Below are positions 3,818 through 48,772 of a stretch of DNA of 50,305 nucleotides, piece by piece. The stretch lies in assembly GCA_004431415.1 (NCBI GenBank), contig QPMI01000356.1, forward strand, positions 1 through 50,305, read 5' to 3'. The notes under the pieces were generated by a model that saw nothing but the letters and a program-made list of their open reading frames with translations, did not search any database and was not told the origin of the DNA. Each line of letters opens with the position of its first letter. The stretch's first letter is position 1. Source of the DNA: Cyanophora paradoxa CCMP329 (lineage: Eukaryota; Plantae; Glaucophyta). The translations under genes and the position numbers were made by a program.

Positions 3818-6471
3818 ATGCGCCACAGAAGCGACCGCAAGAGCGGGGGCAGGTGCTTATGCCGCACGAGCGCCGCACGGGCGCGCAACCGGCGTCGTGA
3901 CGCGTTGCCGCCTCGCAGACGCATCGGCAGAGGGCGCGAGCTATCAGCTTGTGCGTCCACTTTCCCCCGCCGAGAGGCTAACGTCACGCGCTCCGCCGCG
4001 ACTGAACGTCGCAACGCGTGCAGCCGCGCGCAGCCACAGAGCGCGTCGAGCTTCTTCCCTTCGAAGCGTCTCCAGCAGAGGCCGTCTCCGCACCGCGTCG
4101 AGGAGCAGGTCAGAGCGAACCGCCCGAAGCACGTGTTCCCGTCCACGCCGCCGATCCGCTGCGCAGCGCTGCGAGACGCCGCGCGCGGAGAGCTCAAGCG
4201 CCGTGACGAACGCTGCGACCCCTGTGGACTCGGAGGACATCGCGTGGCCCTGGTGGCCCCTGGTGCGCCCGCCCGGGAGCGCCCCGCGCGCCCCGCGCCC
4301 GACCGCGGCGCGCTGCAGGTGCCGTTGTACCCGTACGGCAAGCGGAAGACGATCCGCAAGGAGGTCGTCTACAACAACATATGGACCTTCGACCAGATGC
4401 AGGTCCGCCGCCGACCCCGACCCCGGCCCCCCCTCTGTCCCGCCGCTCTGACCGTGGCGCCCCGCAGGGCATCTTCTATGTCGGTCTGCCTTGCCATATA
4501 CCCCTCCGCCTTGCACCCTGCCCTCTCGTCACGCCCGCCGCGCACCGCAGTCGTGCCCGTCCGCATGACCGTCATCCGGTGCGCCCCGCCCCGCGCAGTC
4601 TGTACCCCCGCTGGACGCGCCGACCCCCCTGCCAGGCTCCGGAACGGAGGCCTGATGGTGTACGCCCCCGTGGCCCCGACGCGCGAGTGCATCCGCATGG
4701 TCCGCGAGCTCGAGGCCGCCTATGGCGAGGTCCGCCTACCCCCCGCGCTTCTCCCCCCTCCCCTCCCCCCCGGCTTCTGACGCGCGCACCTCAGGTGAAG
4801 TACATCATCGTCCCGACGAGGTGCGGGCGGGGCCGGGTGCCCGCCAGCGGCCGGCCGCCCTGACGGCCGCTGCGCCCCCGCCGCCGCCCCCGCCGCGCAG
4901 CACGGGCCTGGAGCACAAGGTCTTCGCTGGTCCCTTCGCCCGCCGCTTCCCCAACGCCCGCGTCTACGTCGCCCGCAACGCCTGGTCCTTTCCGGTGACC
5001 ACGTACCCCTCCCCGCACCCCCCGCACCCTGGTCGAGCGTCGGCGGCGCAGCTCAACCTCCCCCTCTCCTGGCTCGGCCTCCCCGGCGGTCGCACTCAGG
5101 TCAGCGCGCCCACCGCTTCCCAGCCGCGTCCCCCCTCCTCCTCTGATCCGCGTACCCCCAGTACCTCCCCGAGACGGCGGCGGAGACGCCCTTCGGCGAC
5201 GAGTTCGACCTCGCCGCCATACCCCCCGTCGACCTCGGTCCGTACCCCGGCCCGCCCCTCGCGATCGCCCTTCTCTCCGCCCAACGGGGGTACAGGGGTG
5301 GGCCCGTTCGAGGAGGTTGCGCTCCTGCACCGCGCCACGGGCACCCTTATGGTCACCGGTGCGGACCCCTGCCGCCCCTCCCCCCGTCCTTCTCACCGGG
5401 GCCTCAGACGCGCTGGTGAGCATCCCCGACGAGCCGCCCGAGGTGCCTACCCGCCCCGCCCGCCCGCCCGGCCCCTCGCCCCCGGCCGGCCCCGCTTGCT
5501 TCTCTCTGCTAGAAGAATACCGCCTCCGATCTCATAGCAGCGCCCCGATAAGAACGAAGGGCTCGAGAAGCGGCGGGCGCTGAGCTGGGCGGGGGCAGAT
5601 CGTGTCGGCGGGGGTGGACGGGCCCTTCCCCCTGCTCTACCACGCCCGCGACCGCGCCAGCGACCCCGCCGTCGACACCCCCGAGAACCGCCGCAAGGCC
5701 CGCCCCTCGCCTTCGTCGTCGTTGCTGGCCGCGTGCGCTGAGCGCGCCCCGCAGGGCTGGCACCGCGTCGCCCTCTTCGCCCTCCTCTTCCGCCCCTCCG
5801 TCCTCGACGTCCCCACGGTGCGCCCAGCCCCGTACCCCCCTCCCGGAGCCCCCCCGAGCCCGGGCGGCAGCTGGGGGAGGCGCTGGCGGACGCGGGGACG
5901 GCCCCGGACCGCTCCCGCCGCAACCTCTTCGGCCTCTTCCCCTTCAAGTGGCGCCCCGAGTGGGAGGACTCCTTCCACGTGAGACCCCGTACCCCCACCC
6001 CGCTGCTCCCCCGCCCGACGGGCGCCCCGGGCAGGCCCTGCGCGGCGAGGGGCGCCTCCTCGTCGCCCCCATCCTCCAGGAGGTCCTCCTGCCCAGGTAC
6101 CCCTCCCTTCTCCCCCGCCCGCCCCCCGCCCCCCGCCCCTGAGCTTTCCTCCCCGCCCCCTTCCCTCAGGGACCCGTACCGGGTGCGGGAGTGGGCGAAC
6201 ACGGTGGCGGGCTGGAAGTTCGAGCGGATCATCCCGTGCCACTTCGACGCCCCCATCTCCGCCACCCCCAACGACTTCCGGCGAGCCCCCGTCCCCGCCC
6301 GCCGCCCCGCGAGCGCCCCTCTGAGGGGGCGGCAGGCGAGCGTTCGCCTTTCTGGAGCGCTCGAGCGCGCCGGTGGCGCCCCCCAAGGAGGAGGACCTCA
6401 GCTTCATGCGCTCCCTCGAGAACGGCCTCGTCAAGGCCGGCGTCATCCCCGCCCGCCGCCCCAAGCTCTAG
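3818..6471 (+). CDS. DUF4336 family protein (cyanobacterial-type, metallo-beta-lactamase-like), probably plastid-targeted; many exons
   Basis: Spliced peptide WPWWPL|VPLYPYGKRKTIRKEVVYNNIWTFDQMQ|GIFY|VVPVRMTVIR|LRNGGLMVYAPVAPTRECIRMVRELEAAYGE|VKYIIVPT|TGLEHKVFAGPFARRFPNA...FPFKWRPEWEDSF...FERIIPCHFDAP...RRPKL* resembles cyanobacterial DUF4336 proteins as I recall them. Start codon uncertain. Confidence 0.85.
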
Positions 6472-14581: not shown

Positions 14582-15014
14582 TTTAGGGCGTGCGCGTGGC
14601 GAAAGGTTTTGAATTCAAGTCTGCGGCGTGCGAGTCCTTGAGCTCGCGATCGTTGCGAGTTGCGAGTAATTATTTTGGGGTCTCGAGCTCGACTCTAGAT
14701 CGATATCTAGATCTAGATCTCGAGCTCTCTAGAAAACTCCCTCGAGCTCGATGTATAAAAAGGCCGAGCTGCCTCGCCTGGCCGCATTCTTCGCCCATCG
14801 CGAGAAAGGTGATCTTTGCTTCCCACCCCCGCGCTGAAGCTGGGATCTAGATCTAAGCGGTAGTCCGCCGGTCCTCGCAGGTCAACACAGCAAAGCTGCG
14901 ACGGCCGCCTCCGCGCGGCCGGGCGCGGCGTGTTCTGGTTCGCTTCGCCCTTAAGCCCGTAGCTATAGGGTAAGTAGACCTAGGTTTCGATCTCGAGCTT
15001 CGGTATTCGATTTC

Positions 15015-15130
15015 GATTTTCGACGTCACTTGCCTATCTGTCTGAGCCCTTACGATTCGACCGGCGGCCCACTGCTAGCCAAACAGCTACTAGGGCTAGT
15101 CCAAATGTCGTTGGTCGTGTCTGAAATGCA
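15015..15130 (+). mobile_element. 116-bp dispersed structured element, copy 1 (intergenic)
   Basis: 113/116 identical to the reverse complement of 43072-43187. Flanks are unrelated. Confidence 0.85.
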
Positions 15131-15501
15131 AGTCCTTGATCGCAAGCTCGAATTCACATTCCTCTCTTCGCGAAAAGCCACGTGCAAATGAAATGGGGGA
15201 TCTAGATTTGCGCGAAATACTATATGATATCGATATGCGTCGACGTCGGGTACCGGTCGAGGTCGACGTCGCATCGGATCCCCCTCTAGATCTTCTCCCT
15301 TCGAAAAGTTCCTCTGGATCTATAGAAAGGCCTTTCGCCAGGCGCGATGGTCGAGAGCAGAGGCGCCGACCCTTTCTAGATCGAGATCGCCTCTTCCGAA
15401 TCGAGATGCGACCCAGACAAATCGATCTCACACTCTCTGCCCCAGATATAGCCTGTATTGCCTTGGAACAGGAGGGGAGGGCCTCCGTCGCGGCCTGGCG
15501 A

Positions 15502-18500
15502 TCACCGCTTCTTCTTGCCGCCGCCGGCCTCGCGCTGCGCCTGCTTGAGGGCCGCCTGCTGCGCCATGTACGCCGCGTACTGGCCGTCGTCGTGATCAGG
15601 GGGTACCAGGGCGGCGCCCTCTGGGGGTACGGGCTCACCTCCGGGGCGAGGGCGTGCCCCGTGACCTTTATGTGCTGGAACATCTTGTTCCGCGAGGGGA
15701 AGGTTTGCCTGCGCGCCCCCGGGGAAAGTAAGAAGAGGAGGGCGGGGGGAAGGACGAGGGAGGGCGTGGGCGCGCCTGCACTTGTTGCAGACCCACTCGG
15801 AGGCCTCGTCGTCGCTGTCTCCGCCCTTCCCCTTCTTCCCCTTCTTGCCCTTGCCCTGGGGCGGCGCCGCCGGGACCGGGGCCGCCGCGGCCGGGGCCGG
15901 GGCCGGGGAGCGGCCCTTGGCCTGCGGCTGCGCCTGGCCCTGGGCCTTGCCCTTGCCCTTCCCCTTGCCCCGCTTGCTCGGCGTCGCCTCCTCGTCGTCC
16001 CCAGCCGGGGCCGGGGCCGGGGCCGGGGCGGAGGGGCCCGGGGCGACCTCCTCGTCCTCGGCCCCCGTAGACTCCTCCCCCGCCTCCTCGCTCGACTCCG
16101 CCTGCCGCTGCGCCGGTTCGAGTCCGGGGCGGGCCCCCGGGGGAGGGGGGGCGGGGCTCGCCTGGGCGCGGGCGGCCTGCTTGGCGGCGGCCTTCTTCTG
16201 GGCCTTCTGCTGCGCCTTGAGCTGCTGGCGGCGGCTCATGAAGTGCGCCGCGAACGCCGCGTCGTCGTCCCCGCCCTGCCGGCGGGGGCGGCGGCGGTGA
16301 GGCGCCGGCGCGCGCCGCCGGGCGAGGGCGCGGCGAGCGGTGAAGTGCGAGGCGAGCTAGGCGCCCTAAGCGAGCTTGGAAGAAGAGAGAGGACGCTGGA
16401 GGCCTTTCGAGGTCTAGCGGGGGCGGGGTGGGGCGGGGCGGGGTGGCTCACGTCCTCTCCTTCCTCCTCCTCCTCCTCCTCCTCGCCCTCGCTCCCGATG
16501 GCTGCCTTCGCGAGCTTGGCCCGCGCCTCCGCCACCACCTCCTCCTCCTCCTCCTCCTCCTCGTCCTCGTCCTCGTCGTCGCTCTCCTCGTCCTCCTCCG
16601 ATTCCTGCGGGGAGATCGGCCGGCGCGCGGTTGGCGGCCCGGCCGTGCTCCCCGCGTACCTCCTCCTCCGACTCCTCCTCGCTCTCCACAGCCGCCGGCG
16701 GCCGGCGCTGCGGTCCCTTGCCGCCCTGCGGCCCCCGCGGGGGCGGCCCCTTGCCCTTGCCTGCAGGCTTCTCCTCTTCCTCCTCCTCCTCCTGGCGCCG
16801 GCTCAGCGCGCAGAGGCCTCCCCCGGGGCGGGCGAGGGCGCACCTCCGCAGAGTCCTCCTCGCTCTCCACCCGCGCGGCCCTCGCCGCGGCGCCCCGCGC
16901 CCGCGCCCGCGCCCCCGCTGCCGCCGCCGCCTCCACCTGCGGTCTTTGGAGTAAGGAAAGCGCCCGCGGGAGTCTCCGGGGCCGGCGAGCGGGCCTCGAT
17001 CTCGTCGGCGCCCTCTTCGGAGGAGGAGGCCCCCGCGCCCTCCGCCTCGTCGCTGTCCAGCGCCACCTCGCGCCGCAGCTGCCCCGGCCCCCGCTCGCCT
17101 CCGGGGTGCGCGTGCGCGGGGGCGGGGGGGCGGGGGGCGGGACCTGCTCGACGCGCTTGACGTGCTGCTTGGACTTCTCGTGGTTCTTCCACTGCTTGTC
17201 CGACTTGAAGCGCTTCCGGCACGCCACGCAGTAGAACTCGTCCGGCTGCCCCGCCCCGTCACGCGGCGCCCCGGCACGGCGCCGGCGACAGCGGGCAGCG
17301 CGCACCTCGTCGTCGTCCTCCTCCTCGCTCTCCTCCTCGTCCGAGTAGCGCGGCGTCCCCTCCTCCTCCTCCTGCTGCGCCGCCCCCGAGACGTTGGGGG
17401 GGCGGGGGAGGGGGCGGTGCGGAGTCCGGGGCACCCGCAGCTCGGCGAGGCGCTCGGCCTGCAGGCGCCTCATCCGCTCCTGCCGCTCCCGCTCCGCCTG
17501 CGCCCCCGCGTCACGCGTGGCTCCCGCGCGCGGGGCGGGGGGCGCGGGCGGGCCTCCTCGCGGCGGGCCTTCTCGGCGGCGAGCTTCTCCTCGCGCTCGC
17601 GCTTCTTCTCCAGCTGGTACTTCATCCACCGCGGGTCCCGCTGCGCCCCGCCGCGTCTGCCGGGCACGGGCGCGGCGGGGCGCGGGCCGGGGGCGCGGCG
17701 CCGGTCACCTTGCGGACGAACTCGACGAGCTCGCGGACGCTCTCGTTGAAGACGCGGCGCTCCTTGTCCCGCTGCGGCGGCCCGGGCCCCGGCGTGGGCG
17801 GGCGCGGGCAGGGCGCGGGGCACAGGGGCACCTCCTTCTTGTTCTCCTTCTCCATGGCGCGGCGGTACTGGCGGTTGGGGGCCTGCGGGGGCGCGTGGGC
17901 GGGGGGAGGTGCGGGCGGGGGCGGGCGGGGGGCGCACGGTGGCGACGTTGTAGGCGTCGCACCAGGCGAAGGACTTGCACGAGCTGAACGCGCTCCAGTG
18001 GTTGTAGAAGGCGTTCACCTGCCGCCCCCCGCCCCGCCCGTGAGGAAGGCCAGGGGGGCGAGACGGGGGGGGGTGGGGGGGGGGGATTGGACCTCGGGGA
18101 AGTCGGAGGTGGACTTGCCGAAGGGCGGGGCGGCGCGGTGGGCGCCCCGCTCGGCGGCCGCCCCCTCCTCCTCGTCGAGCGTCTGAAACACGCGCGCGTA
18201 GACCTGGTAGAAGCCCTGCGGGGGCGTCGCACCCGGAGGCGGCGGCGGCGGGCGGGGGGGCGGGGGGGACCTTGGGCCCGTCCCCGAAGTCGTCGTAGGC
18301 GGAGGAGCGGAAGAACTCCCACAGGCGGACCTTCGTGTCCTCGCCCGTGTGCCCGCCCTCCTCCACGTCGTCTGAAGCCGCCAGAGACCGCCGTCAGGGG
18401 CCGCGCCAGTCGAGGGGGAGCGCGGGGCGGGCCGGCGCACCGCCGCGGAGGATGGCGTCGCGGTGGCTGTCGTACCACGAGCGCTCGTGCGGGTCGCTCA

Positions 18501-20112: not shown

Positions 20113-22667
20113 TTAGAAGAAAAGGCGGCTGCACAGTCTACTCCAAGAGACTGGCGGGGGCGGCAGGGGCGGGGGCGGGTGCTTGGGCGGGAGGGGGCGG
20201 GGCGCCCAGGGGCGGGGCGGGATGCGGGCTGGGGCGGGGGTGGCGGGGCCGGGGCGGGGGAGCGGGTGCAAGTTCGCGAAGGGGGACGGGCTCGCCGGTG
20301 GCCGCGCCGGCCGCCGGGGAGGCCCCGGGAGCGATGCGAGGCGGCGGCGGCGCTCGGATATCACGTAGTGCGCGCCGCCGGCCTGCCCGGGCGAGGCGGC
20401 GCCCTCAGCGGCTCAGGCGGGGGGGGGGGGGGGGGGGGGGGGGGCGGACCGCTGCGGCGACGCAGAAGGCGACGAGGGAGAGGGGGGCGCCCCGGTCCAC
20501 GAAGCGGGCGGCCGGCGAGGCGTACCCCTCCGGGTCCGCCTTGGCCAGGCCCACCCGCAGGTTCTCCCTGTCGAAGACCGCGTAGTAGGCCCTGCCGCGC
20601 GTGAGGCGAGACGGGGCGCAAGGCGGAGGCGGTGCTGGCGCGGTACCGAAGGAAGACGTCGCCCAGGATCCAAACGCTGGGGCTGCGTGACACGGACGAG
20701 TCAAGGACGGGATTGGGGGGAGGGCGGGGGGAGAAGGGGCGGGGCCGTACTTGATTTCCTGGGTGCCGAGGGCGAGAGTGCAGACGGGCCGGCCGCCCTC
20801 CTCTGCGACCTGGGCCCCGCCCCGCCCCCTCGCATCGGGGGCGGGGTCGTGGGGGTGCGGGACGGGCGGGCACCTGGACCACGAATTCCTCCGGCGAGAG
20901 GGAGAACGGTACCCCCGCTTCCCCCAGCGCGAAGGTGATGGCGGGGACCCTTGGCGCGGGGGAACGAATTCAGCGTGGGGGGCGGAGGGGAGGGGGCGGG
21001 GGGAATCGAGGGCGGGCACTTGTCGAGGTCGCGGCAGTCCCAGCGGGGCCCCGCCATGGAGGCCGAGGGCGGGCCCCCCGGCGCCGCCCGCTCGCTCTTC
21101 GGCGGGGGTGAGAGGGGCCGCGGGGGGCGCGCAAGGGGGCGGGCGGGCCTGGAGGAGGCGGACGCCGGAGAGGAGGCGGGCGGCGAGGGCGCGCACGGCC
21201 TCGGGGGGCCCCACCAGCAGCGAGCTCCCCGTGTCCAGGATCGCCCCGCACCCGCCCCGCCCCCCGCCCCCAGCCCCCCGGCACAAGGGCAGCGCGCTCG
21301 CCCCCGCCGCGATCCCCGCCAGCCGCACCCGCCAGTAGCTCTCCCTGCGGTGCTCCCCGCTCGGCCCCGGAGGAACAAGCGCTGAGAGCCGCGTACCCCA
21401 TGATGGGGAGGAAGGTGTACTCGTAACGCGGGTCCCGCCCCCCCAGGATGAGGGCGCTCTCCCCGGACCTGCCCGGCCCGTTGGCCGGCGCGCGGAGGAG
21501 GGGAGGGAGGGGGGGAAACGGGGGACGGGGAGGGGTACCGGCTCGGATCGCGCCCCAGGTAGAACGAGAACTCGTTCGCGGGGAGGGCGCCCTGGGGCGC
21601 GCGCACGTCAGGGGGAGGAGGAAGGAAGCGGGGGGTACGGGAGGCGCCTGGGACATGAGCGCGTCGAAGAGGGGGTACAGGCCGTCCTCGGAGAGGGAGG
21701 GGAAAGCAAGGCCCACGATCCCGTCCGCCGGCGTCTCCTGCCGGGGGTACGCTCGGTCACGGGGGGGAAGTTGAGGAGAGGGAGGGGGTACGGGCGCGCC
21801 GAGAAGACGGCCTCGTCCTCACTGACGGCCTCCCCGAAGGCCACGTCCCGTGCCACGAGCCCCGCCACCCGCACCGTGTCCCGGCCCACGTACCCCTTCA
21901 TGCTCCCGGAGCCGTACTTGGGGAGGGGTACGCCGTGAGAAGGTGGCGGGGGGCGGCGCTCCCGGCCGCCGGGGTGCAGTTGCAATGCACGCACGTGGAT
22001 CTCGATGCCGGTGCCCACGAAGCTGTAGGTCTTGGAGAGGGACCCGTCGAAGCGCCTGTGCGAGCCGCACGAGGACTCGCAGCGGCGGGACGGGACCCTG
22101 AGAAGGGCGGCCGGTTGTGGCGCGGCTGCGGTTGCGGCGAGGGGCACGCGGGCGCCGCACCACAAGTTCGAGGACCTGCGCGAGCGCTCTCAGGAGGGCC
22201 TCGCGGAGGCTCGAGAGCGGCGGCGGCGGACCCGGTGTCGAAAACGCATGTGAAGAGCTGCTCGGGCTCGCCGATCGAAATCTCGCCCACGTACTCCGTC
22301 TGCGACGCCGGAGTCGGCGGTTTTGAAGCGCGGGGCTGCTCAAGCGGATCGAGGGTAAACTCACGTAGAAGTTCGTGAGCGGTAACCGCGCCGCCCCGGG
22401 CGAGGCCTCCGAACCGCCGCGGCCGAGCAAACGGCGGGCGCGAGCATCCGCGCTGATGGCCGGGAGTTGGTCGGCTGCGGCGCCGTCCTGCAATTTCACC
22501 AGCGCTGCTAGGTGCATCTTCACCGCGTCCGCGTTGAGCCGCTGCTCCCGCCGCAGCGCTATGACGCGGGCCGCACTTGGGCCAGGGCGACGCATAGGGG
22601 TGGCGCTGATCCACGCGGCGCAGCCCAGCACCAGCAGCAGCAGCGCCACCCCGAAGCCGCGGCCCAT
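20113..22667 (-). CDS. Pepsin-like (A1) aspartic protease with signal peptide and probable C-terminal membrane anchor
   Basis: Signal MGRGFGVALLLLVLGCAAW. Then LTNFY|TEYVGEISIGEPEQLFTCVFDTG|SSNLW, YGSGSMKG, DGIVGLAFPSLS, second catalytic AILDTGSSLLVGP, and WILGDVFLR|AYYAVFDRENLRVGLA. 3' end approximate. Confidence 0.92.
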
Positions 22668-24506: not shown

Positions 24507-24541
<35 letters not shown>

Positions 24542-25148: not shown

Positions 25149-27796
25149 GCCCTGGGCCCTCCATAGAAGGTTCTCTCAGAGTCTCGAAGCTAGCGCTTCA
25201 GAGAAATCCTCCGAGGCTTCCAAGGAATTCGAATCGTCGCCTGGAACGCTCTGGAAAGAACTTCTGAAACTTGTTGACAAACGCGATGGAATCATTCAAT
25301 TATCATTGGAATGATCATCCAGAATATTAGCCTATTTTTCAATGATAAGGTACCGGTAATTCGAACACGCGTCGTTGTTTTTCGTACTACCGTAGTACGG
25401 ACCTGTACGGTAAATGCGTAATGAAGTCGAAGTCCGGCTCCGCGGCGGACTCCCGGAGTCCAATCCGCATCGAGAGTCGAGACTCGAGCTAGCCTTGTGA
25501 CGGGCAACTTGGGGCCAGTGATGGTATTCCGAATTAACCGAAAAACTGCCCATTCCAGGAATAATTCCTGGAATATTCCTAGTAAGATTCCGAATTCTTT
25601 ATTGTTTCTAGAAACCCTTCCCTCGTACTACGGTACACGCGTACCGTAGTACCGCACCCCACGCCGGCCCAGCCCCGCCCCGCCCGCCCCTCCCCGCTTT
25701 GCGAGACCACTGTATGAACTGTCAAGCATTAAATATTGAAGCATATTCATGCGTTCGAAGGTGCAGCGCTAGAAAATAATTAAGAGTCGGCCGCGCGGAG
25801 CGCTTTAGTAGCGGCCTTTAGAAGGGGGTGTGCGCGGCGCGCGCTATACGGGGTCTAGATCTAGATCTGTTGGAGCGTCCGAGAGCCCCCTCGCACTACA
25901 GCTAGCTTCTCCCGCGCTGCAACTAAGGCTGCATCACGTACCCCCCCAGCACCTCAGGTTTAGTATACGATAAATCTTTAGTAGTGGGGCCTGAAAACTT
26001 TGGTACTATAAAGATCCAGTATACTAAATATTTCCCGACTTACAGTAAAGGCTTGAAAGTTGAACCCCGCCGCGGCGCGCTTCTACTCGCCGCCGAGTCG
26101 CCGGTCGGAGTCTCGAGAGCTCGCTTTGTTGATCGAACTCGGAATTCCGGTGCACTCACGTTCACATATATTCGCACATATATGCTTTTTTCACACCACA
26201 GGCTCACAGCATGCATATGCGCAATGTGAACAGTTACTGTGAACAGTGAACTTCGCTATTTTTTAACATTTGGAACTCGGGAGTTCGAACACGCAAAAGC
26301 GACGATGACATTAGTGAAACTGACAGAGTCTGACACGCGAGAGCTGCCCGATTGGAGTGCGATGTTTCGCAAACTGTGTTCGTTTGGAACGCCAAGTTGT
26401 CGACAACTGATGGTCAGACTAGGTCAGTGATGGATCTGTCCGACGGTTCAATGTCCATATTTGATATATCGATGAACACGTGAACACATGCAGAGCGAAT
26501 GATTGAACGCTCATTCAATCATTATAGGCCGCGCGGCCCTTAGCCATGGACGTGCGCATGCCTGCCAATGCTGCCACGCGGGCCATTGCCTGGACATGCG
26601 CATGCGCATCGCAGGATATCGATTCGCAGCGCATCATCTGCGCATGCGCAGCGCATGCCGCATGCGCGGACTCCGGGATGATGCGCCTCGCCGCGGCCGG
26701 AGTCGATCGGGACTCGGGAGTCGGGACTCCGGAATCCGGATCGAGTCGCCCGCGGTGAACAGTGAACACCGAACAGTGAACACGTTTGCGGAGGTTCAAA
26801 TGTTTTTCTTCCACAACGTACTACTACTACGGTACTAGTACGGTACTACTGGTAGAACGTCGAACTTCTAGAAGTTCGCCGAACACTTCTGCCGCTGCTG
26901 CCCCGTACCGTACGGCGTACGTTCGCAATGCTACGCATCTGCCAAGCCTACGCTGGCGATGAAGGTCGCAGCCTGGCAGACTCGCAGTCGCCGAGTCACG
27001 AGTCGACATCTCATGATCAGAGTCGACGTCTTCAAGGCTTACTAAGTCGGAAATTCGAAAACGGGGCCCACGCCCGGCCCAGGCGGCCAGGCCCAGGCTG
27101 CAATTGGCAACAGGCGTCACCGCGAAGGCCTCCGATCCCCATTCGCGTGCAATTCGCAAGGCCCGAGCTCGAGGAAAAGGACTTCGCCAAAAATTGGGAG
27201 CTCGAGGAGTGCGGACAGCAGCTGTCAGCAGCAGCAAAAAGCAGCGACCAAGCGGTCGCACGTACGCGTCGTTCGCCTCCGCGGTCGCTTAGCTCGGCCA
27301 GCTGCACTGCGGAAGCACGCGCGGCGTCGGGCCACGCGAAGCGACGCGCGCGCGTACGTCAGGTCGGATCGGAGCGGCGCGTATACGAATACGCGAGCGC
27401 GGCAGCGGCGATCGCAGCACGCGCGCGCGTAGGGCATCACCATCAGCGATCGGGCGTTCAACGCGCGTTCGCTCAGACGAGACGAAGGTTCCACCCGCTG
27501 CCAGCGCGTCTGTCAGCGATCAAATTGCAAAGCTGGCGACCGCCGGCGCCGTCGCCCCGCACGCGGCGCTCTTTCCCGACACCGCCGGGGCACGCTACAG
27601 GCGCGAGCGCGTGCTCGCCAGGCGCAACAGCAACTCTCGTGAGGGCGTCGTGCGGCGGCGCGTCGGCAGGCCGCCCGTGCAGCTGCAGGCGCCGGCGCCG
27701 CAGCCTGCGACCGGGCCATTAGACGTAGAGGCGCTGCTGGAGCTGTGCGCCGCGGCGGCGCCTGCACCGCGCAATTGCAAGCGCCCGGCGGCAGAG

Positions 27797-30700: not shown

Positions 30701-32493
30701 AAGCGCCGGCGGGCCCTTCGGTGTTGACGTCGTGCGCCCTCAATTCGACGCTAGCCAAAGACCACGCTAGAATTCCGAAGAACCGGATGGGAAGCCGAAA
30801 CCAAAGAATCGAACAAGAAGCTTAGAAAGGAGCGAAGAAGAAGAAGGGAGAAGAGAGCTGACGCGCGTGCTGGCGGGCGGTGCGCGCAGCTGCCGAACGT
30901 GCTGTACGCGGAGGCGCTGGTGCGGCTCGGGGAGCTGATGGTCGTCGAGGGCCACGTCGAGGAGGGCCTCCAGACCCTCGTCCGCCCCCGGCCCCCGACC
31001 CCCGCCCCGCACCCCTCACCCCTCACCCCTGACCCCCCCGCGCGCAGTTCGACGTGCGCGGCCCCGCCCTGCACCCCTCGACCCGCGCCCCTCGCCCCCG
31101 CCCTCGCCGACGGGGGGCGCGCAGGCGTGGTCGGTGGTGCTGCGCGCGGGGGCCTGCCCCTCCCGCCTCGAGTCCCGCATCATCCTCCTCCTCGCCGAGG
31201 GGCACTGTGCGCCCCCGCACCGCCCTTTCCCACCCCCCGCCCCTTCCCCCCGGCGCCTGACGGTCGCGGGGCGGGGCGGGCAGTCGTGCACCCGACGGCC
31301 TTCCAGCTGGGCGAGCGGGTCTACTGGTGCACGCAGAACGTGGAGGACCGGCACCAGGAGGCGCGGGCGTGCAACCTGCTGGCGGCGCTGGCGGCGAGCG
31401 CGGGGCGCCTCGAGGAGGCCCGCGCCCACGTCGACCGCGTCTTCGAGATCCAGCTCCAGCTGCCCCCGCACGAGCAGTGCGCCCCCCTGCTCCGCGACAG
31501 CGAGCTCAGGGAGCTCCTGCCCAGAGAAGCGGAGAGACCGAGAAGAGCGCAAGGGAATAAGAAGCGGATAGGGCCCCCCCGTTCATTTCCTTTTTAGCTT
31601 CTTTTCCGTCCTTATCGACCTTGAATTGCGATGGGGCGCGCTGACGGGGGCCGGGGGCAGGGAGCGGGAGGCGGCGGGGTACCTGGCTACGAGCACGGCG
31701 GTGCCGATGGCGCTGCGGGCGGGGCGGACGCACGAGTGCTTCGAGCTGGCGCGCACCGCCCACGCCATATACCGCCGCCTCCCCGACGCCGCCCAGTGCG
31801 CCCCGCCCCACCCGCCTCCCGCTGCGCATGCCCCCCCTGCGCGGTCTCACGGGGGGTACCGGGGGCGCAGCGCGGCGGGGGACGTGGTGACGGGGGGCTT
31901 CCGGGCGATGCACCGCTTCCCGCACCTGCTCCCCGCCTACGCCGAGGCCGCCCGCTTCGCCCTCTTCCTCTCCGCCCTCGCCGACCCCGAGTGCGGCCCC
32001 CCGAGCCCGCCCCCCGCCCCCCGCCCCGCCCCGCGGGGTGTGCTGAGGGGTGGGGCCGGGGGCAGGGAGAGCACGCCGACGCGCTTCCTCGCCCTCTGCG
32101 GCCTCGGCGAAGTCTACGCCCGCCAGGTCCGGGTCCCGCCCCCGCGTCCCAGCCCCCTCCGATCGCGAGTCGCCCCGCCGCCGGCTCACCCGGGGCGGGC
32201 GGGGCAGGGCGCGTGGCGGCGGGCGGCGGTGGCGTACGGGGCGGCGCTGGAGGCCTCCGCGCGGCACCGGCGCTCCTTCCCCCTCGACCACCCCCGCATC
32301 CTCGTCCGCCCTCCCCCTCCCCCCGCGCCCCGCCCCGCCGGCCTCCTGTAGATCTAGACCTGACGGGGCGCGGGGCGGGCAGCGGGTGACGGAGGCGGTG
32401 CGGCGGTGCCGGGAGCTGAGCGAGGCAGTGCCGCTGCCGCTGAGCTTTCCGGGGCCCCCGACCCCCGTCGGCGAGCTCCACTTCCTCTTCTGA
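27797..32493 (+). CDS. Large hypothetical protein: N-terminal beta-rich region, Pro/Ser linker, C-terminal TPR-like helical repeats; many exons
   Basis: Consistent splice signals join exons such as ARVTISAWPET...YDGFTIK|GNPSLGVDLHIG, LYAEALVRLGELMVVEGHVEEGLQTL, EARACNLLAALAASAGRLEEARAHVDRVFEIQ, FLALCGLGEVYARQ|GAWRRAAVAYGAAL, and PLDHPRIL|...ELHFLF*. Confidence 0.6.
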
Positions 32494-40707: not shown

Positions 40708-43420
40708 CTAATGGGCACTGGCGGCGCCCGGGAATGGGAGGCGGGCGGCGGCGGCGAGGAGCTTGCGGGGCTGCGGGGGGGCGCGGGGCCGTGCGGGGTG
40801 AGCAGGCGGGCGGGGGCGCGGGGGCGGCTGGAGGGGACCTCGAGGGGGACGGAGGTGTGGAAGCCGGCCTCGAGGAAGACCGCCACGAAGAGCGGGCTCA
40901 GCGGGATCATCGCCTGCGCGGCCGTGAGGGGCGGCCGGGGGGCGGGGGGCGGGCGGGTGCGGGGCGGACGGCCCAGGTGACGGCGAGGCAGGCGAGGCGG
41001 GGCGCCCGCCTCCGCAGGCCCGGCAAGAGCTTCGAGAGGGCGACCTGCCGCCCGTTGGGGGGGGGGGGGGGGGGGGGGGGGGGCGAGGGGGCGGGGGCGC
41101 CTGGGCGATGCAGAGGGCGTAGTGGGCGAGGAAGAAGAGGACGTGGCGCCCCCGGCCGTCCGGTTGAGCGTCACCAGGCACAGCTGCGCCCGCCCTCAGC
41201 GCACCGGGGGGGGGGCATGCGAGGAGGGCCCGGTGGGCCTCCTAGAGCTGGGAGCGGGGGCGGACGGGGTGGGGCGGGCGGGGCGGGGCGGGGCGGGGGC
41301 GGCGCGCGTATTCGTGCATGAGGCCGGAGTAGAGGAAGACGGCGAGGGCCGAGGCCGCCGCCCGCGCCCGCTCCTGCGCCGCCTCACGTGGGGGCGGGCG
41401 GCGCAGGCGGGCGGGCGGGCGGGCCTCGGCGGGAGGCGCTGGGAGAGGGCCGACGCGAAGTGGAAGACGGAGAGGCGGCGGGCCTGCGGGAGGCTCAGGG
41501 GGGAGGGCGGGGCGCGCGGCGGGGGCGCGGCGCACCTGGCCCTCGCTCCTCCGCCGCTGCCGGCGCCCGCGCCTGCGGGCCCCGCAAGGGTCGGGCGGGG
41601 GCAGGGCGAGGGGAGGGGCGGGGAGGGGAGGGGGCGCACGGGCGGTCCTCGGGGCGGGGGCGGGCGGGGCCTCGCCGCGGGCGTAGAGGGGGCGGAGGAG
41701 GCGGGGGAGCCGGGTGGCAGGGGCGAGGGCGTCGGGCGCCCGGCCCCGCCCCTCGGGCCTCGCCGGCGTCCCCGGCCGGCTATCGCCTCCGCTCGCGCTG
41801 TGGGGCCGGTGTGGGCGCCCCCACGAGGGCGGGCACCGCAGGGCGGGAGAGGCGGGGCGGGGCGCGCACGGGCGGCCCGGCGCGCCGCGGGACCCGTCCC
41901 CGTGCGCGCTGTGCCCGTTCCCGTCGCCGTTGCCGTTGCCGACGCGGTACTTGTCGAAGATCAGCTCCCGAGCCAGCACGCTGAAGCTGCGCGGGGCGCT
42001 CAGGGGCGGGGCGGGGCGCTTGGGGCGGGGCGGGGCGGGGCGGGGAGGGCGCGCCCCGTGTTCCAGCGGTTGCTCCAGAAGTCGCGCGGGGAGGTGCAGA
42101 ACCAGGGGTTGTCTGCAGACCGCGTCACCCGGCAAGGAGAGGGCGGGCGGCGCGGGCGGCGGGGCGCGCCGAAGATGTCGGAGAGCTTCACGTGCGGAGC
42201 GAGCACGCCGATGAGCCCGTTTTGCACGTCGAACGCCCCGCTGAGGAAGAAGTACCCCTGCCCGACAAGGGTCACCCCGCGCGGCCTCGTGAGGGCGGCG
42301 GGGGCGGGGGGCGGGCGGGCGGGCGGGGGCGGCGTGCCGCGATGATGGCCTGGTGGCAGTAGATCTGAGTCGGCGGGTGAGGCCGGCGGGGCGGGGCGCG
42401 CGCTCACGGCGCAGAACCCGGCAGGGCGCACCGTGTACCAGAAGAAGGGAAGGGCGCGGAAGTCGAAGCGCTGGAGGGCCCACACCCAGAGGGCCCAGAG
42501 GGCGAACTTGCCCGCGGCGCGCGCGAGGCGGGCGGCGCCGGCGCGGTACCCCGCCCGCACGTCGGCGTCGGAGGCGTCGGTCTTCGCCTTGACGCGGCCT
42601 CCCTCGGGGAAGACGAGGAGCGAGGCGGCGAACTCGGCGGGGCTGAGGTGCCGCAGCTGCAGCGGGTTCCGCACGAAGAAGAGGACCGCCGTCTGCGCGC
42701 GCGCGGGGAGCGGGCCGTGAGCGGCGCCGCCTCTCGAGGGGCGGCACGCCGCGCGCCTTCATTGTCAAGAGGAGGCCGAGCGTGACGAGGCAAAAGTCGC
42801 TGACGGGGAACTGCGGGAACAAAGCATGGTGAGGTACCGGATCGGGTGAACGCGGTGCTGGCGCGGGGGGGGGCGAACGCCAGTGCGGAAGGCCACAGGA
42901 AAGGTCAAGCTAAAAAGGAATCAGCCGCTGGGGGCTCCGCGGCTGCGCGACGGAGGACAGCGCACGAGAGGAAGACGACAGGCATCGCAGCTCGTCTGAG
43001 GCCGCGCTCGTCGTTGATGAGCTGCGCGGCGGCGGCGGTGTCAACGCCGGACGCGTACGCGAGTGTAATCGTGCATTTCAGACACGACCAACGACATCTG
43101 GACTAGCCCTAGCAGCTGTTTGGCTAGCAGTGGGCCGCCGGTCGAATCGTAAGGGCTCAGACAGATAGGCAAGCGACGTCGAAAATCACAGGGCACAGGG
43201 GAGGCCCGCGTCGCCGGCGTTCCGCAGGGCGGCGTCGCGCGTGCGCCCGAACGGACGACGGGAGACGTCGACGCACCAAGACGGCGAGGAAGAGGTACAC
43301 GCAAGATGCGCCGAGCACGCTGAACTCAAACGCGGCGCCTTTGGGGCGCAGCGGCTCGGCGTCGTGCAGCTTCTTCAGCGCGGCCTCGAGGGCTTGCTCG
43401 ACGCGCTCGGCGGTCTCCAT
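40708..43420 (-). CDS. MBOAT_2 / wax-ester-synthase-like O-acyltransferase
   Basis: METAERVEQALEAALKKLHD..., LSDIF|DNPWFCTSPRDFWSNRWNT|SFSVLARELIFDKY, AVFLYSGLMHEY (catalytic His), VLFFLAHYALCIAQ. Confidence 0.85.
43072..43187 (-). mobile_element. 116-bp dispersed structured element, copy 2 (inside intron 1 of the MBOAT gene, sense orientation)
   Basis: Reverse complement matches 15015-15130 with 3 substitutions. Host intron 43022-43276 is ~255 nt versus ~60 nt for most introns here. Confidence 0.85.
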
Positions 43421-43518
43421 ACGCGGCAGTCGCGGTGCGGCCAGCTGCAGTCGCGGGGAGAACGCGGCCGCGACGCGCCCGCGGGGCTGTACAGGTGCGA
43501 CGGAGGAAAGAGTGACAC

Positions 43519-43573
43519 CCGCTCGGACAGCCTCGACAGCCGCTCGGACAGCCCCGACAGCCGCTCGGACAGC
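43519..43573. repeat. 21-bp tandem repeat x2.6 (CCGCTCGGACAGCCYCGACAG)
   Basis: Read directly; lies just upstream of the MBOAT start. Confidence 0.85.
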
Positions 43574-43627
43574 GCGCCAGAGGGGTACGGCTCGTTGCAA
43601 ATTGACGTACCCAAACCTTTATGCTGC

Positions 43628-43679
43628 TGCATTTCAGACACGACCAACGACATCTGGACTAGCCCTAGCAGCTGTTTGG
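43628..43679 (-). mobile_element. 5'-truncated (52 bp) copy 3 of the element, flanked by TGCTGC direct repeats
   Basis: Identical to 43072-43123. TGCTGC occurs at 43622-43627 and 43680-43685. Confidence 0.8.
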
Positions 43680-44005
43680 TGCTGCACGTGCCGGCGTTGC
43701 CGCCGCGGGAGCCAACTTTAAAGACGACGTCAGTGACTAGATCTAGATTCGCAACTTCAACGGCGTGTTGGGCGCATCGCATCAACATCAACGCACTTGC
43801 AAGTTGTAACGCCGGTCCCGCAAGTCGACGCACTTGCAAGTCGACGTCGCGGGGGGCGCGCGCGCTGATCGCATCAACCTTACCTAACGTCTAGACACCA
43901 GCATCGGCGCGCACTTGTGCTGCAGCTGCGCGTTCTGCGGCAGCGCATCGCGTCCAGCCGGTCTCCCTGCCGTCTGGCAGTCGCATGCGCAGCGTAGCAG
44001 CGGGA

Positions 44006-48733: not shown

Positions 48734-48772
<39 letters not shown>

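Follow-up and report, generated by a model that had tools for sequence, protein, structure and literature searches.

A 116-bp repeat with a fixed 3′ end in Cyanophora paradoxa is probably a tiny non-autonomous mobile element

Analysis of a 50,305-nt stretch of Cyanophora paradoxa DNA (the window) revealed a dispersed 116-bp repeat that is probably a mobile element. Its copies and their borders suggest that it is most likely a young, tiny, non-coding and non-autonomous element copied from a fixed 3′ end. Copying may have proceeded at the DNA level by a one-ended route of the Helitron2-, IS91- or Fanzor-linked kind, a plausible reading that we hold with somewhat less than even confidence; a SINE-like RNA route is possible but less likely, and our lean towards the DNA route is weak. 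The copies, their fixed 3′ end, the truncation, the direct repeat and the strand-specific stem-loop are direct observations, whereas we infer that the repeat moves, in which direction it is copied, that it does so as DNA next to GCA, and which kind of partner would move it.

Repeat search, blastn with short words, nhmmer --max and self-comparison of the window recovered three copies, and no more, within the 50,305 nt:

15015-15130, plus strand: copy 1, full-length, 116 bp (k-mer counts, blastn, nhmmer)
43072-43187, minus strand: copy 2, full-length, 116 bp (k-mer counts, blastn, nhmmer)
43628-43679, minus strand: copy 3, 5′-truncated, the element's last 52 bp

An initial annotation of this DNA had placed three copies with sharp shared ends at these positions, and k-mer counts, blastn and nhmmer all bear this out. 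The 3′-terminal 24-mer occurs exactly three times in the window against none expected in shuffled sequence, and the 5′ 35-mer of the element occurs twice. In the self-comparison, the 116-bp family was the sole repeat that is not of low complexity. A weak candidate for a fourth copy, at 6254-6288, was judged a chance match.

The two full-length copies lie 28 kb apart in opposite orientation, share a 5′ end that is the same to the base, and are identical at 113 of 116 aligned positions (97.4%). Since they diverge by 2.6%, the family appears young. Copy 3 matches copy 2 over all 52 nt, on the same strand and with 556 bp between them. The 3′ end is common to all three copies, and alignment showed their flanks to be unrelated on both sides, ruling out segmental duplication. 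Because copies 2 and 3 are identical and 556 bp apart, the three copies represent only two independent places, which weakens the earlier extrapolation from three copies in 50 kb to a high copy number.

The differences between copies 1 and 2 are three, at element positions 14, 75 and 90, each A versus G (window positions 15028, 15089 and 15104 in copy 1; 43174, 43113 and 43098 in copy 2), with A in copy 1 and G in copies 2 and 3 where covered. On the opposite strand, one of these sites lies in a CG context and two in CWG (CAG/CTG) contexts. Decay of methylated cytosines from C to T in copy 1 would look like this, the three sites being too few to say more.

The borders of the truncated copy carry a feature that had escaped the initial annotation, a 6-7 bp direct repeat, (T)GCAGCA, that brackets it:

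43680-43685, minus strand: direct repeat GCAGCA on the 5′ side of copy 3, reading TGCAGCA if 43686 is included
43622-43627, minus strand: direct repeat GCAGCA on the 3′ side of copy 3, directly after the element's terminal TGCA

In its TGCAGCA register, the repeat overlaps the element's last four bases, TGCA. When random 52-nt segments of the same window were scored identically, a flanking repeat of at least 7 bp was found in 0.5% (P ~0.005) and one of at least 6 bp in 1.3% (P ~0.013). The same scoring gave a best length of 0 at full copies 1 and 2. The (T)GCAGCA around copy 3 looks like a target-site duplication (TSD).

All three 3′ junctions (marked by a caret) read ...GAAAT^GCA, the element end there being ...AAATGCA. 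The full copies are set in their flanks as ...TTTC^G...A^AGTC (copy 1) and ...CTGT^G...A^CGAT (copy 2). The pattern is that the 3′ end is always exact, while the 5′ end is either shared without a duplication or truncated with one; each part of it rests on one or two cases, drawn from three copies at two independent places.

We regard the repeat as mobile because three copies share an identical 3′ end within unrelated flanks and one of them is bracketed by a duplication. The copies could instead have been laid down during DNA repair, by templated filler synthesis or the capture of fragments at breaks, with copy 3 derived from copy 2. The identity of copies 2 and 3, their proximity on the same strand and the short microhomology at the junction of copy 3 would suit such an origin. 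Repair offers no reason, however, for the same 3′ stop in three of three copies or for the same 5′ base in copies 28 kb apart, and the flanking direct repeat resembles a staggered-cut duplication. We consider a repair origin very improbable.

An invariant 3′ end, together with a truncated copy and its duplication, is the mark of copying that started, or was defined, at the 3′ end. Two routes are known for 3′-end-defined copying: target-primed reverse transcription and one-ended DNA transposition of the HUH rolling-circle type. By the DNA route, copying would be anchored at the fixed 3′ terminus, 13 nt beyond a stem-loop. A run carried to completion would leave 116 bp that begin at a defined 5′ end and lack a target duplication; an aborted or one-ended run would yield a 5′-truncated copy with a short target duplication beginning GCA. 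The transposase, supplied in trans, would be of the HUH rolling-circle type, as in IS91 and algal Helitron2, and insertion would take place in one orientation, directly 5′ of GCA. The constant GCA at the 3′ junctions fits insertion in a fixed orientation beside a short target, of the kind shown by IS91 and Helitrons (PMC10288648).

We favour the DNA route because the combination seen here of complete copies lacking a TSD and truncated copies carrying one has been published for CRe-1, 2 and 3, the Fanzor1-carrying non-autonomous Helitron2 families of Chlamydomonas reinhardtii described by Bao and Jurka in 2013 (PMC3627910). In these families a TSD is missing wherever a copy extends to the consensus 5′ end, 5′-truncated copies bear TSDs of variable length (~7-19 bp), and 3′ ends are nearly always intact, from which the authors infer one-ended rolling-circle transposition (PMC3627910). 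The missing duplications at the two full copies fit the HUH and Fanzor readings, which the initial annotation had listed as alternatives, at least as well as its preferred one.

The preferred reading of the initial annotation was a SINE-like or hitch-hiking retroposon, in which the 3′ stem-loop of an RNA of ~116 nt would be read by the reverse transcriptase (RT) of a partner LINE or Penelope-like element. The partner would share the tail, and copies would arise by target-primed reverse transcription. The exact 3′ end suits this route, as does the one 5′-truncated copy with a target duplication, and the shared exact 5′ end would mark the transcript start. The duplication opens with the bases that close the element (TGCA or GCA), as if the nicked target primed on the RNA 3′ end; this is expected from target-primed reverse transcription as well and counts against the DNA route. 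In the Cyanophora paradoxa genome, LINEs account for 2.47% of the sequence (PMC6704402).

Other properties of the element argue against retroposition. Both full copies are without target duplications, which does not favour a SINE. The 3′ end, ...GTCTGAAATGCA, has no poly(A), A-run or tandem repeat that could serve as a simple-repeat tail. The best matches to Pol III A and B boxes have at least 3 mismatches, ARAGORN found no tRNA, and Rfam gave no match indicating a 5S, 7SL or tRNA origin, leaving transcription of a 116-nt unit after insertion unexplained. These results agree with the earlier remark that the repeat was not recognisable as derived from tRNA, 5S or 7SL RNA, and we rejected such an origin. 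Nor does the window hold an RT gene or, elsewhere in its length, a LINE tail with the element's sequence. On this balance we regard the SINE-like route as possible, and less likely than the DNA route.

No transposon protein was found in the window by Pfam search of 150 ORFs, which returned no RT, HUH or OrfB/TnpB domain. The partner RT, HUH or Fanzor gene proposed earlier is therefore absent from the window's ORFs, and with no transposon protein nearby the element would be non-autonomous.

The element carries a predicted stem-loop, given here for copy 1:

15054-15120, plus strand: predicted imperfect stem-loop of copy 1, 67 nt

Its outer stem has 11 pairs (15058-15068 with 15107-15117), three of them G-U, and its inner stem has 7 pairs (15074-15080 with 15094-15100, CTAGCC/GGCTAG within) around a 13-nt loop. 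This predicted fold is the stem that had been drawn in the initial annotation. The stem-loop ends 13 nt before the element's 3′ terminus, and the 5′ and 3′ ends of the element are able to pair (UUUUC with GAAA[U]), enclosing the hairpin. The heptamer TGTCTGA does occur twice, as had been noted, at element positions 25-31 and 104-110.

Folded as RNA, the excised stem-loop (element positions 39-107) scored z -4.3 and -3.1 against shuffles on the written strand and z -0.55 on the complement, values that are generous because the stretch was picked after the fold had been seen. DNA parameters gave no significant value for either strand, with z of -1.3 and -1.6 for the written one and of -0.1 and -0.4 for its complement. 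The strand-specific hairpin is real, and its better folding as RNA than as DNA points to a possible role at the RNA level. That it is no better than shuffles as a DNA hairpin speaks against the DNA route, and the SINE-like reading gains from a stem-loop that is favoured on the sense strand only, mainly under RNA parameters and with three G-U pairs.

At the scale of the whole 116-mer the fold is unremarkable: set against dinucleotide shuffles, copy 1 gave z -1.28 and -1.21 and copy 2 gave z -0.62, and the opposite strand has no extra stability (z +0.41). All three A/G differences fall at unpaired positions. No pair has changed on both sides, a result that is uninformative either way with three copies and three substitutions, and the SINE-like route gains no support from covariation. 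The strand-specific fold had earlier been taken to imply selection. Its strand specificity stands, mainly as RNA, but the step to selection finds no covariation behind it and a whole-element fold equal to that of shuffles. The same two results leave unsupported the proposal of a new class, a structured-RNA mobile element. Nothing that we found requires such a class, which we regard as improbable.

To compare the element with known RNAs, we searched Rfam and found no family at gathering scores and none credible even at E up to 10, so no described non-coding RNA was found there. The best match, SNORD60, lay on the other strand and reached 14.8 bits, where the gathering score is 42. Box C (RUGAUGA) was matched with at least 3 mismatches, no H/ACA layout was seen, and CUGA is present near the 3′ end; a snoRNA was rejected on the missing box C and H/ACA layout and on the strand and low score of SNORD60. 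A hammerhead core was likewise missing, there being no exact CUGANGA (best window 1 mismatch) and no match to the Rfam hammerhead models, and we set aside a hammerhead retrozyme or Penelope-like terminal repeat. The element's ends are only 53% alike when inverted and thus form no terminal inverted repeats (TIRs); this, with full copies that lack a fixed-length duplication, excluded a MITE.

Coding potential gave no stronger lead. The element frame at 15015-15128 (plus strand) is open through all 38 codons, and ORFs at 43044-43325 and 43378-43890, both on the minus strand, cross copies 2 and 3 in this open frame. The 38-aa peptide had no relatives among 1.84 billion protein representatives, returning one meaningless match, and the open frame is most likely due to chance. 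The earlier description of an element with no poly(A), no clean TIR and no convincing ORF therefore holds. No exact 24- or 28-mer of the element occurred in GTDB genomes, in metagenome contigs from JGI or in viral contigs from IMG/VR, and blastn of the element against plasmids and phages returned nothing; these results speak against a foreign sequence. Collectively, the copies, their ends and the null family searches support the view that the repeat is dispersed, non-coding and probably mobile, and that its 3′ end is fixed.

The repeat might alternatively be a family of small functional RNA genes, intron-encoded or independently transcribed, with two gene copies and one pseudogene fragment derived by retroposition or repair. 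Consistent with this are the sense orientation of copy 2 within a predicted intron, ends able to pair around a stable hairpin, and inter-copy differences that are all unpaired. Three substitutions are too few, however, to show selection, and the element has no Rfam match, box C or H/ACA layout. Alignment of the flanks revealed no shared promoter or terminator elements, copy 1 is antisense to both of its neighbours, and the element is absent from the JGI metagenome, IMG/VR and GTDB collections searched. Such a gene family seems to us quite improbable.

The genomic surroundings of the copies are those of ordinary host DNA. The Cyanophora paradoxa assembly comprises 712 contigs and 99.94 Mb (PMC6704402). 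GC content in the window ranges from 61 to 82% per 2 kb, with many G/C homopolymer runs and low-complexity sequence of the (CCCCG)n type. Pfam domains identified there are DnaJ, RAI1, steroid dehydrogenase, pepsin-type protease, DUF4336, DRMBL and JAZ-type zinc finger, and the proteins so identified belong to ordinary eukaryotic host genes. None of ten ATG-started ORFs of the window was present in the protein collection. Homopolymer runs of ~28-35 G (C on the other strand) lie at 20416-20444, 24507-24541, 41055-41083 and 48736-48768, and (CCCCG)n/(CGGGG)n microsatellites are dotted through the gene-rich DNA.

Copy 1 lies in a spacer of ~900 bp between two minus-strand genes, one with its stop codon near 15505 and the other with its ATG near 14583. 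About 165 nt from that ATG and facing away from it, a TATAAAA occurs near 14748 on the plus strand (within 14600-14790). It could belong to a divergent promoter whose plus-strand transcript would cross copy 1 in the sense direction; downstream of it there is no ATG-started coding frame.

Copy 2 appears to sit in sense orientation in the first intron of a minus-strand gene:

43022-43276, minus strand: predicted intron 1 of the host gene, GTGCGT...CGCAG, 255 nt, holding copy 2

The predicted intron, with donor GTGCGT at 43276 and acceptor AG at 43023-43022, would measure 139 nt with the element removed, and the reading frame continues after it. The predicted exon 1 spans 43277-43420 (minus strand; 48 codons) with a GC3 of 0.90 counted by eye, and unspliced read-through from it meets a stop inside the element. 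The ATG of this gene lies ~210 bp downstream of copy 3. An introner was rejected: the predicted intron runs on past the element by 89 nt on one side and 50 nt on the other, so the splice sites are not supplied by the element.

The host gene of copy 2 had no Pfam match on any single reading frame, probably owing to its short exons, and its 252-aa ORF found no match in a large protein search in which candidates were probably swamped by low-complexity words. Two motifs seen by eye in this gene (41900-43420, minus strand), DFWSNRWN and SGLMHEY, recall wax-synthase/MBOAT-type acyltransferases, a label drawn from these by-eye motifs only.

A further motif of the window is the palindrome GATCTAGATC, found 9 times with at most one mismatch where shuffles would give 0.5. 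Its sites (14704-14719, 14844-14853, 15199-15208, 15379-15388, 25852-25867, 32351-32360 and 43740-43749) always fall in lower-GC intergenic DNA, including the spacer of copy 1 and DNA upstream of the gene associated with copies 2 and 3. In this genome the palindrome may serve as a motif of promoters or spacers.

The RNA-type hairpin and the exact 3′ boundary also bring to mind the right end of a Fanzor/TnpB transposon. The repeat would then be the omega-RNA scaffold of such a transposon, left as tail-only copies, and the stem-loop would have been kept as the parent's RNA scaffold and not for transposition; if the parent uses a one-ended DNA route, this reading overlaps with our preferred one. 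A guide-RNA scaffold reaching to the element boundary would match the 116-nt size, the RNA-type stem-loop favoured on one strand only and the precise right end, and 3′-intact truncated copies with target duplications have been published for Fanzor1-carrying Helitron2 (PMC3627910). Against this, no Fanzor/TnpB coding remnant lies upstream of the copies, whose flanks are host sequence, a host exon included. Two independent copies share an exact 5′ end without duplications, which ragged truncation does not predict, and the Rfam TnpB-associated RNA motifs were unmatched. We consider a Fanzor/TnpB tail unlikely.

Should the 116-mer match the tails of Fanzor elements, the stem-loop would be a guide-RNA scaffold and the element a derivative of a Fanzor system. 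Even then, the shared 5′ end without duplication would need a separate cause, possibly that the 116-bp unit had become a transposable unit of its own.

A more radical option is a free-standing structured-RNA module that spreads without a protein gene, either as a solo omega-RNA-like scaffold or as a promoter-less retroposed RNA. In the former version, each copy's new 3′ flank could be a potential guide for a trans-supplied Fanzor nuclease; in the latter, the RNA could be retroposed by an enzyme specific for the 3′ stem-loop. Neither version corresponds, to our knowledge, to any type of non-autonomous element so far reported from eukaryotes, and we rate this option a long shot. The element would carry greater weight if it were tied to Fanzor elements or shown to move as a promoter-less RNA.

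Returning to the preferred reading, a tiny mobile element copied from its 3′ end, we note that 11.5% of the Cyanophora paradoxa genome is classed as 'unknown repeats' (PMC6704402). If our reading is right, the repeat adds one further family to the largely uncharacterised repeats of this glaucophyte genome. It would also make a very small test object, with 116 bp carrying everything needed for being copied, and a single window displays both outcomes, complete without a duplication and truncated with one. How algal Helitron2/Fanzor elements produce these paired outcomes has been a question since 2013, and a 116-bp unit could be a handy substrate for addressing it.

Compared with known systems, the element shares features with several and departs from each. 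With the omega-RNA right ends of Fanzor/TnpB elements it shares the size class (~100-130 nt), a strand-specific RNA structure, an exact boundary and a differing flank after each copy. It differs in that no Fanzor ORF or remnant adjoins it, two of its copies share a defined 5′ end, and the left flanks have no TAM-like motif in common.

The 'stringent' SINEs bear a 3′ stem-loop tail shared with their partner LINE, as in UnaSINE1/UnaL2. Like them, the element is short and non-coding, lacks poly(A), has a stem-loop near a fixed 3′ end and includes one truncated copy with a duplication. It differs from them in having neither a Pol III head nor a short tandem repeat tail, and from SINEs generally in full copies without target duplications.

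Among DNA transposons, IS91 and ISCR elements target the tetranucleotide GTTC or CTTG, whereas the target here would be GCA, as read from three junctions only; they are also bacterial and without truncated copies that bear duplications. They resemble what we propose for the element in their one-ended, orientation-specific insertion 5′ to a short motif and in canonical insertion without duplication (PMC10288648, PMC3627910). Rep-type transposons more broadly insert in one orientation beside a short target motif and have hairpins near their ends (PMC10288648), which would suit the constant GCA and the subterminal stem-loop seen here.

The closest parallel in the duplication pattern is with the CRe Helitron2 families, with which the element shares intact 3′ ends, the absence of a TSD on complete copies (n = 2), its presence on the truncated one (n = 1) and an algal host; its stem-loop near the 3′ end may correspond to their 3′ hairpin. 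Helitron2 is defined by asymmetric TIRs and a 5′ terminal hairpin (PMC3627910), and neither was found in the element; no inverted match of 8-15 bp was found between its first 20 nt and its 3′ region. Insertion was not at T^T or after TTTT, and the element's 5′ base is G, not T. Its 116 bp are far below the lengths stated for non-autonomous Helitrons, 657 and 673 bp (PMC3627910), its hairpin is long, imperfect and weak as DNA, and the window holds no RepHel protein. We did not file the repeat as a Helitron because asymmetric TIRs, a T^T target and a 5′ T were all looked for and not found.

Replitrons (Craig 2023) are algal copy-and-paste Rep elements with a right-end palindrome and short direct repeats at or near both termini, most families lacking a target duplication (PMC10288648). 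Their right-end palindrome, the usual lack of a target duplication and the algal hosts bring them close to the element. The element differs in that its single direct repeat, TGTCTGA, lies 6 nt from the right end and 24 nt inside the left end, where it is non-terminal, and assignment to the Replitrons was rejected on this account. In its behaviour the element recalls either the one-ended Helitron2/IS91 type or a stringent SINE, is demonstrably a member of neither, and is best described as a new, unclassified family of tiny non-autonomous mobile repeat.
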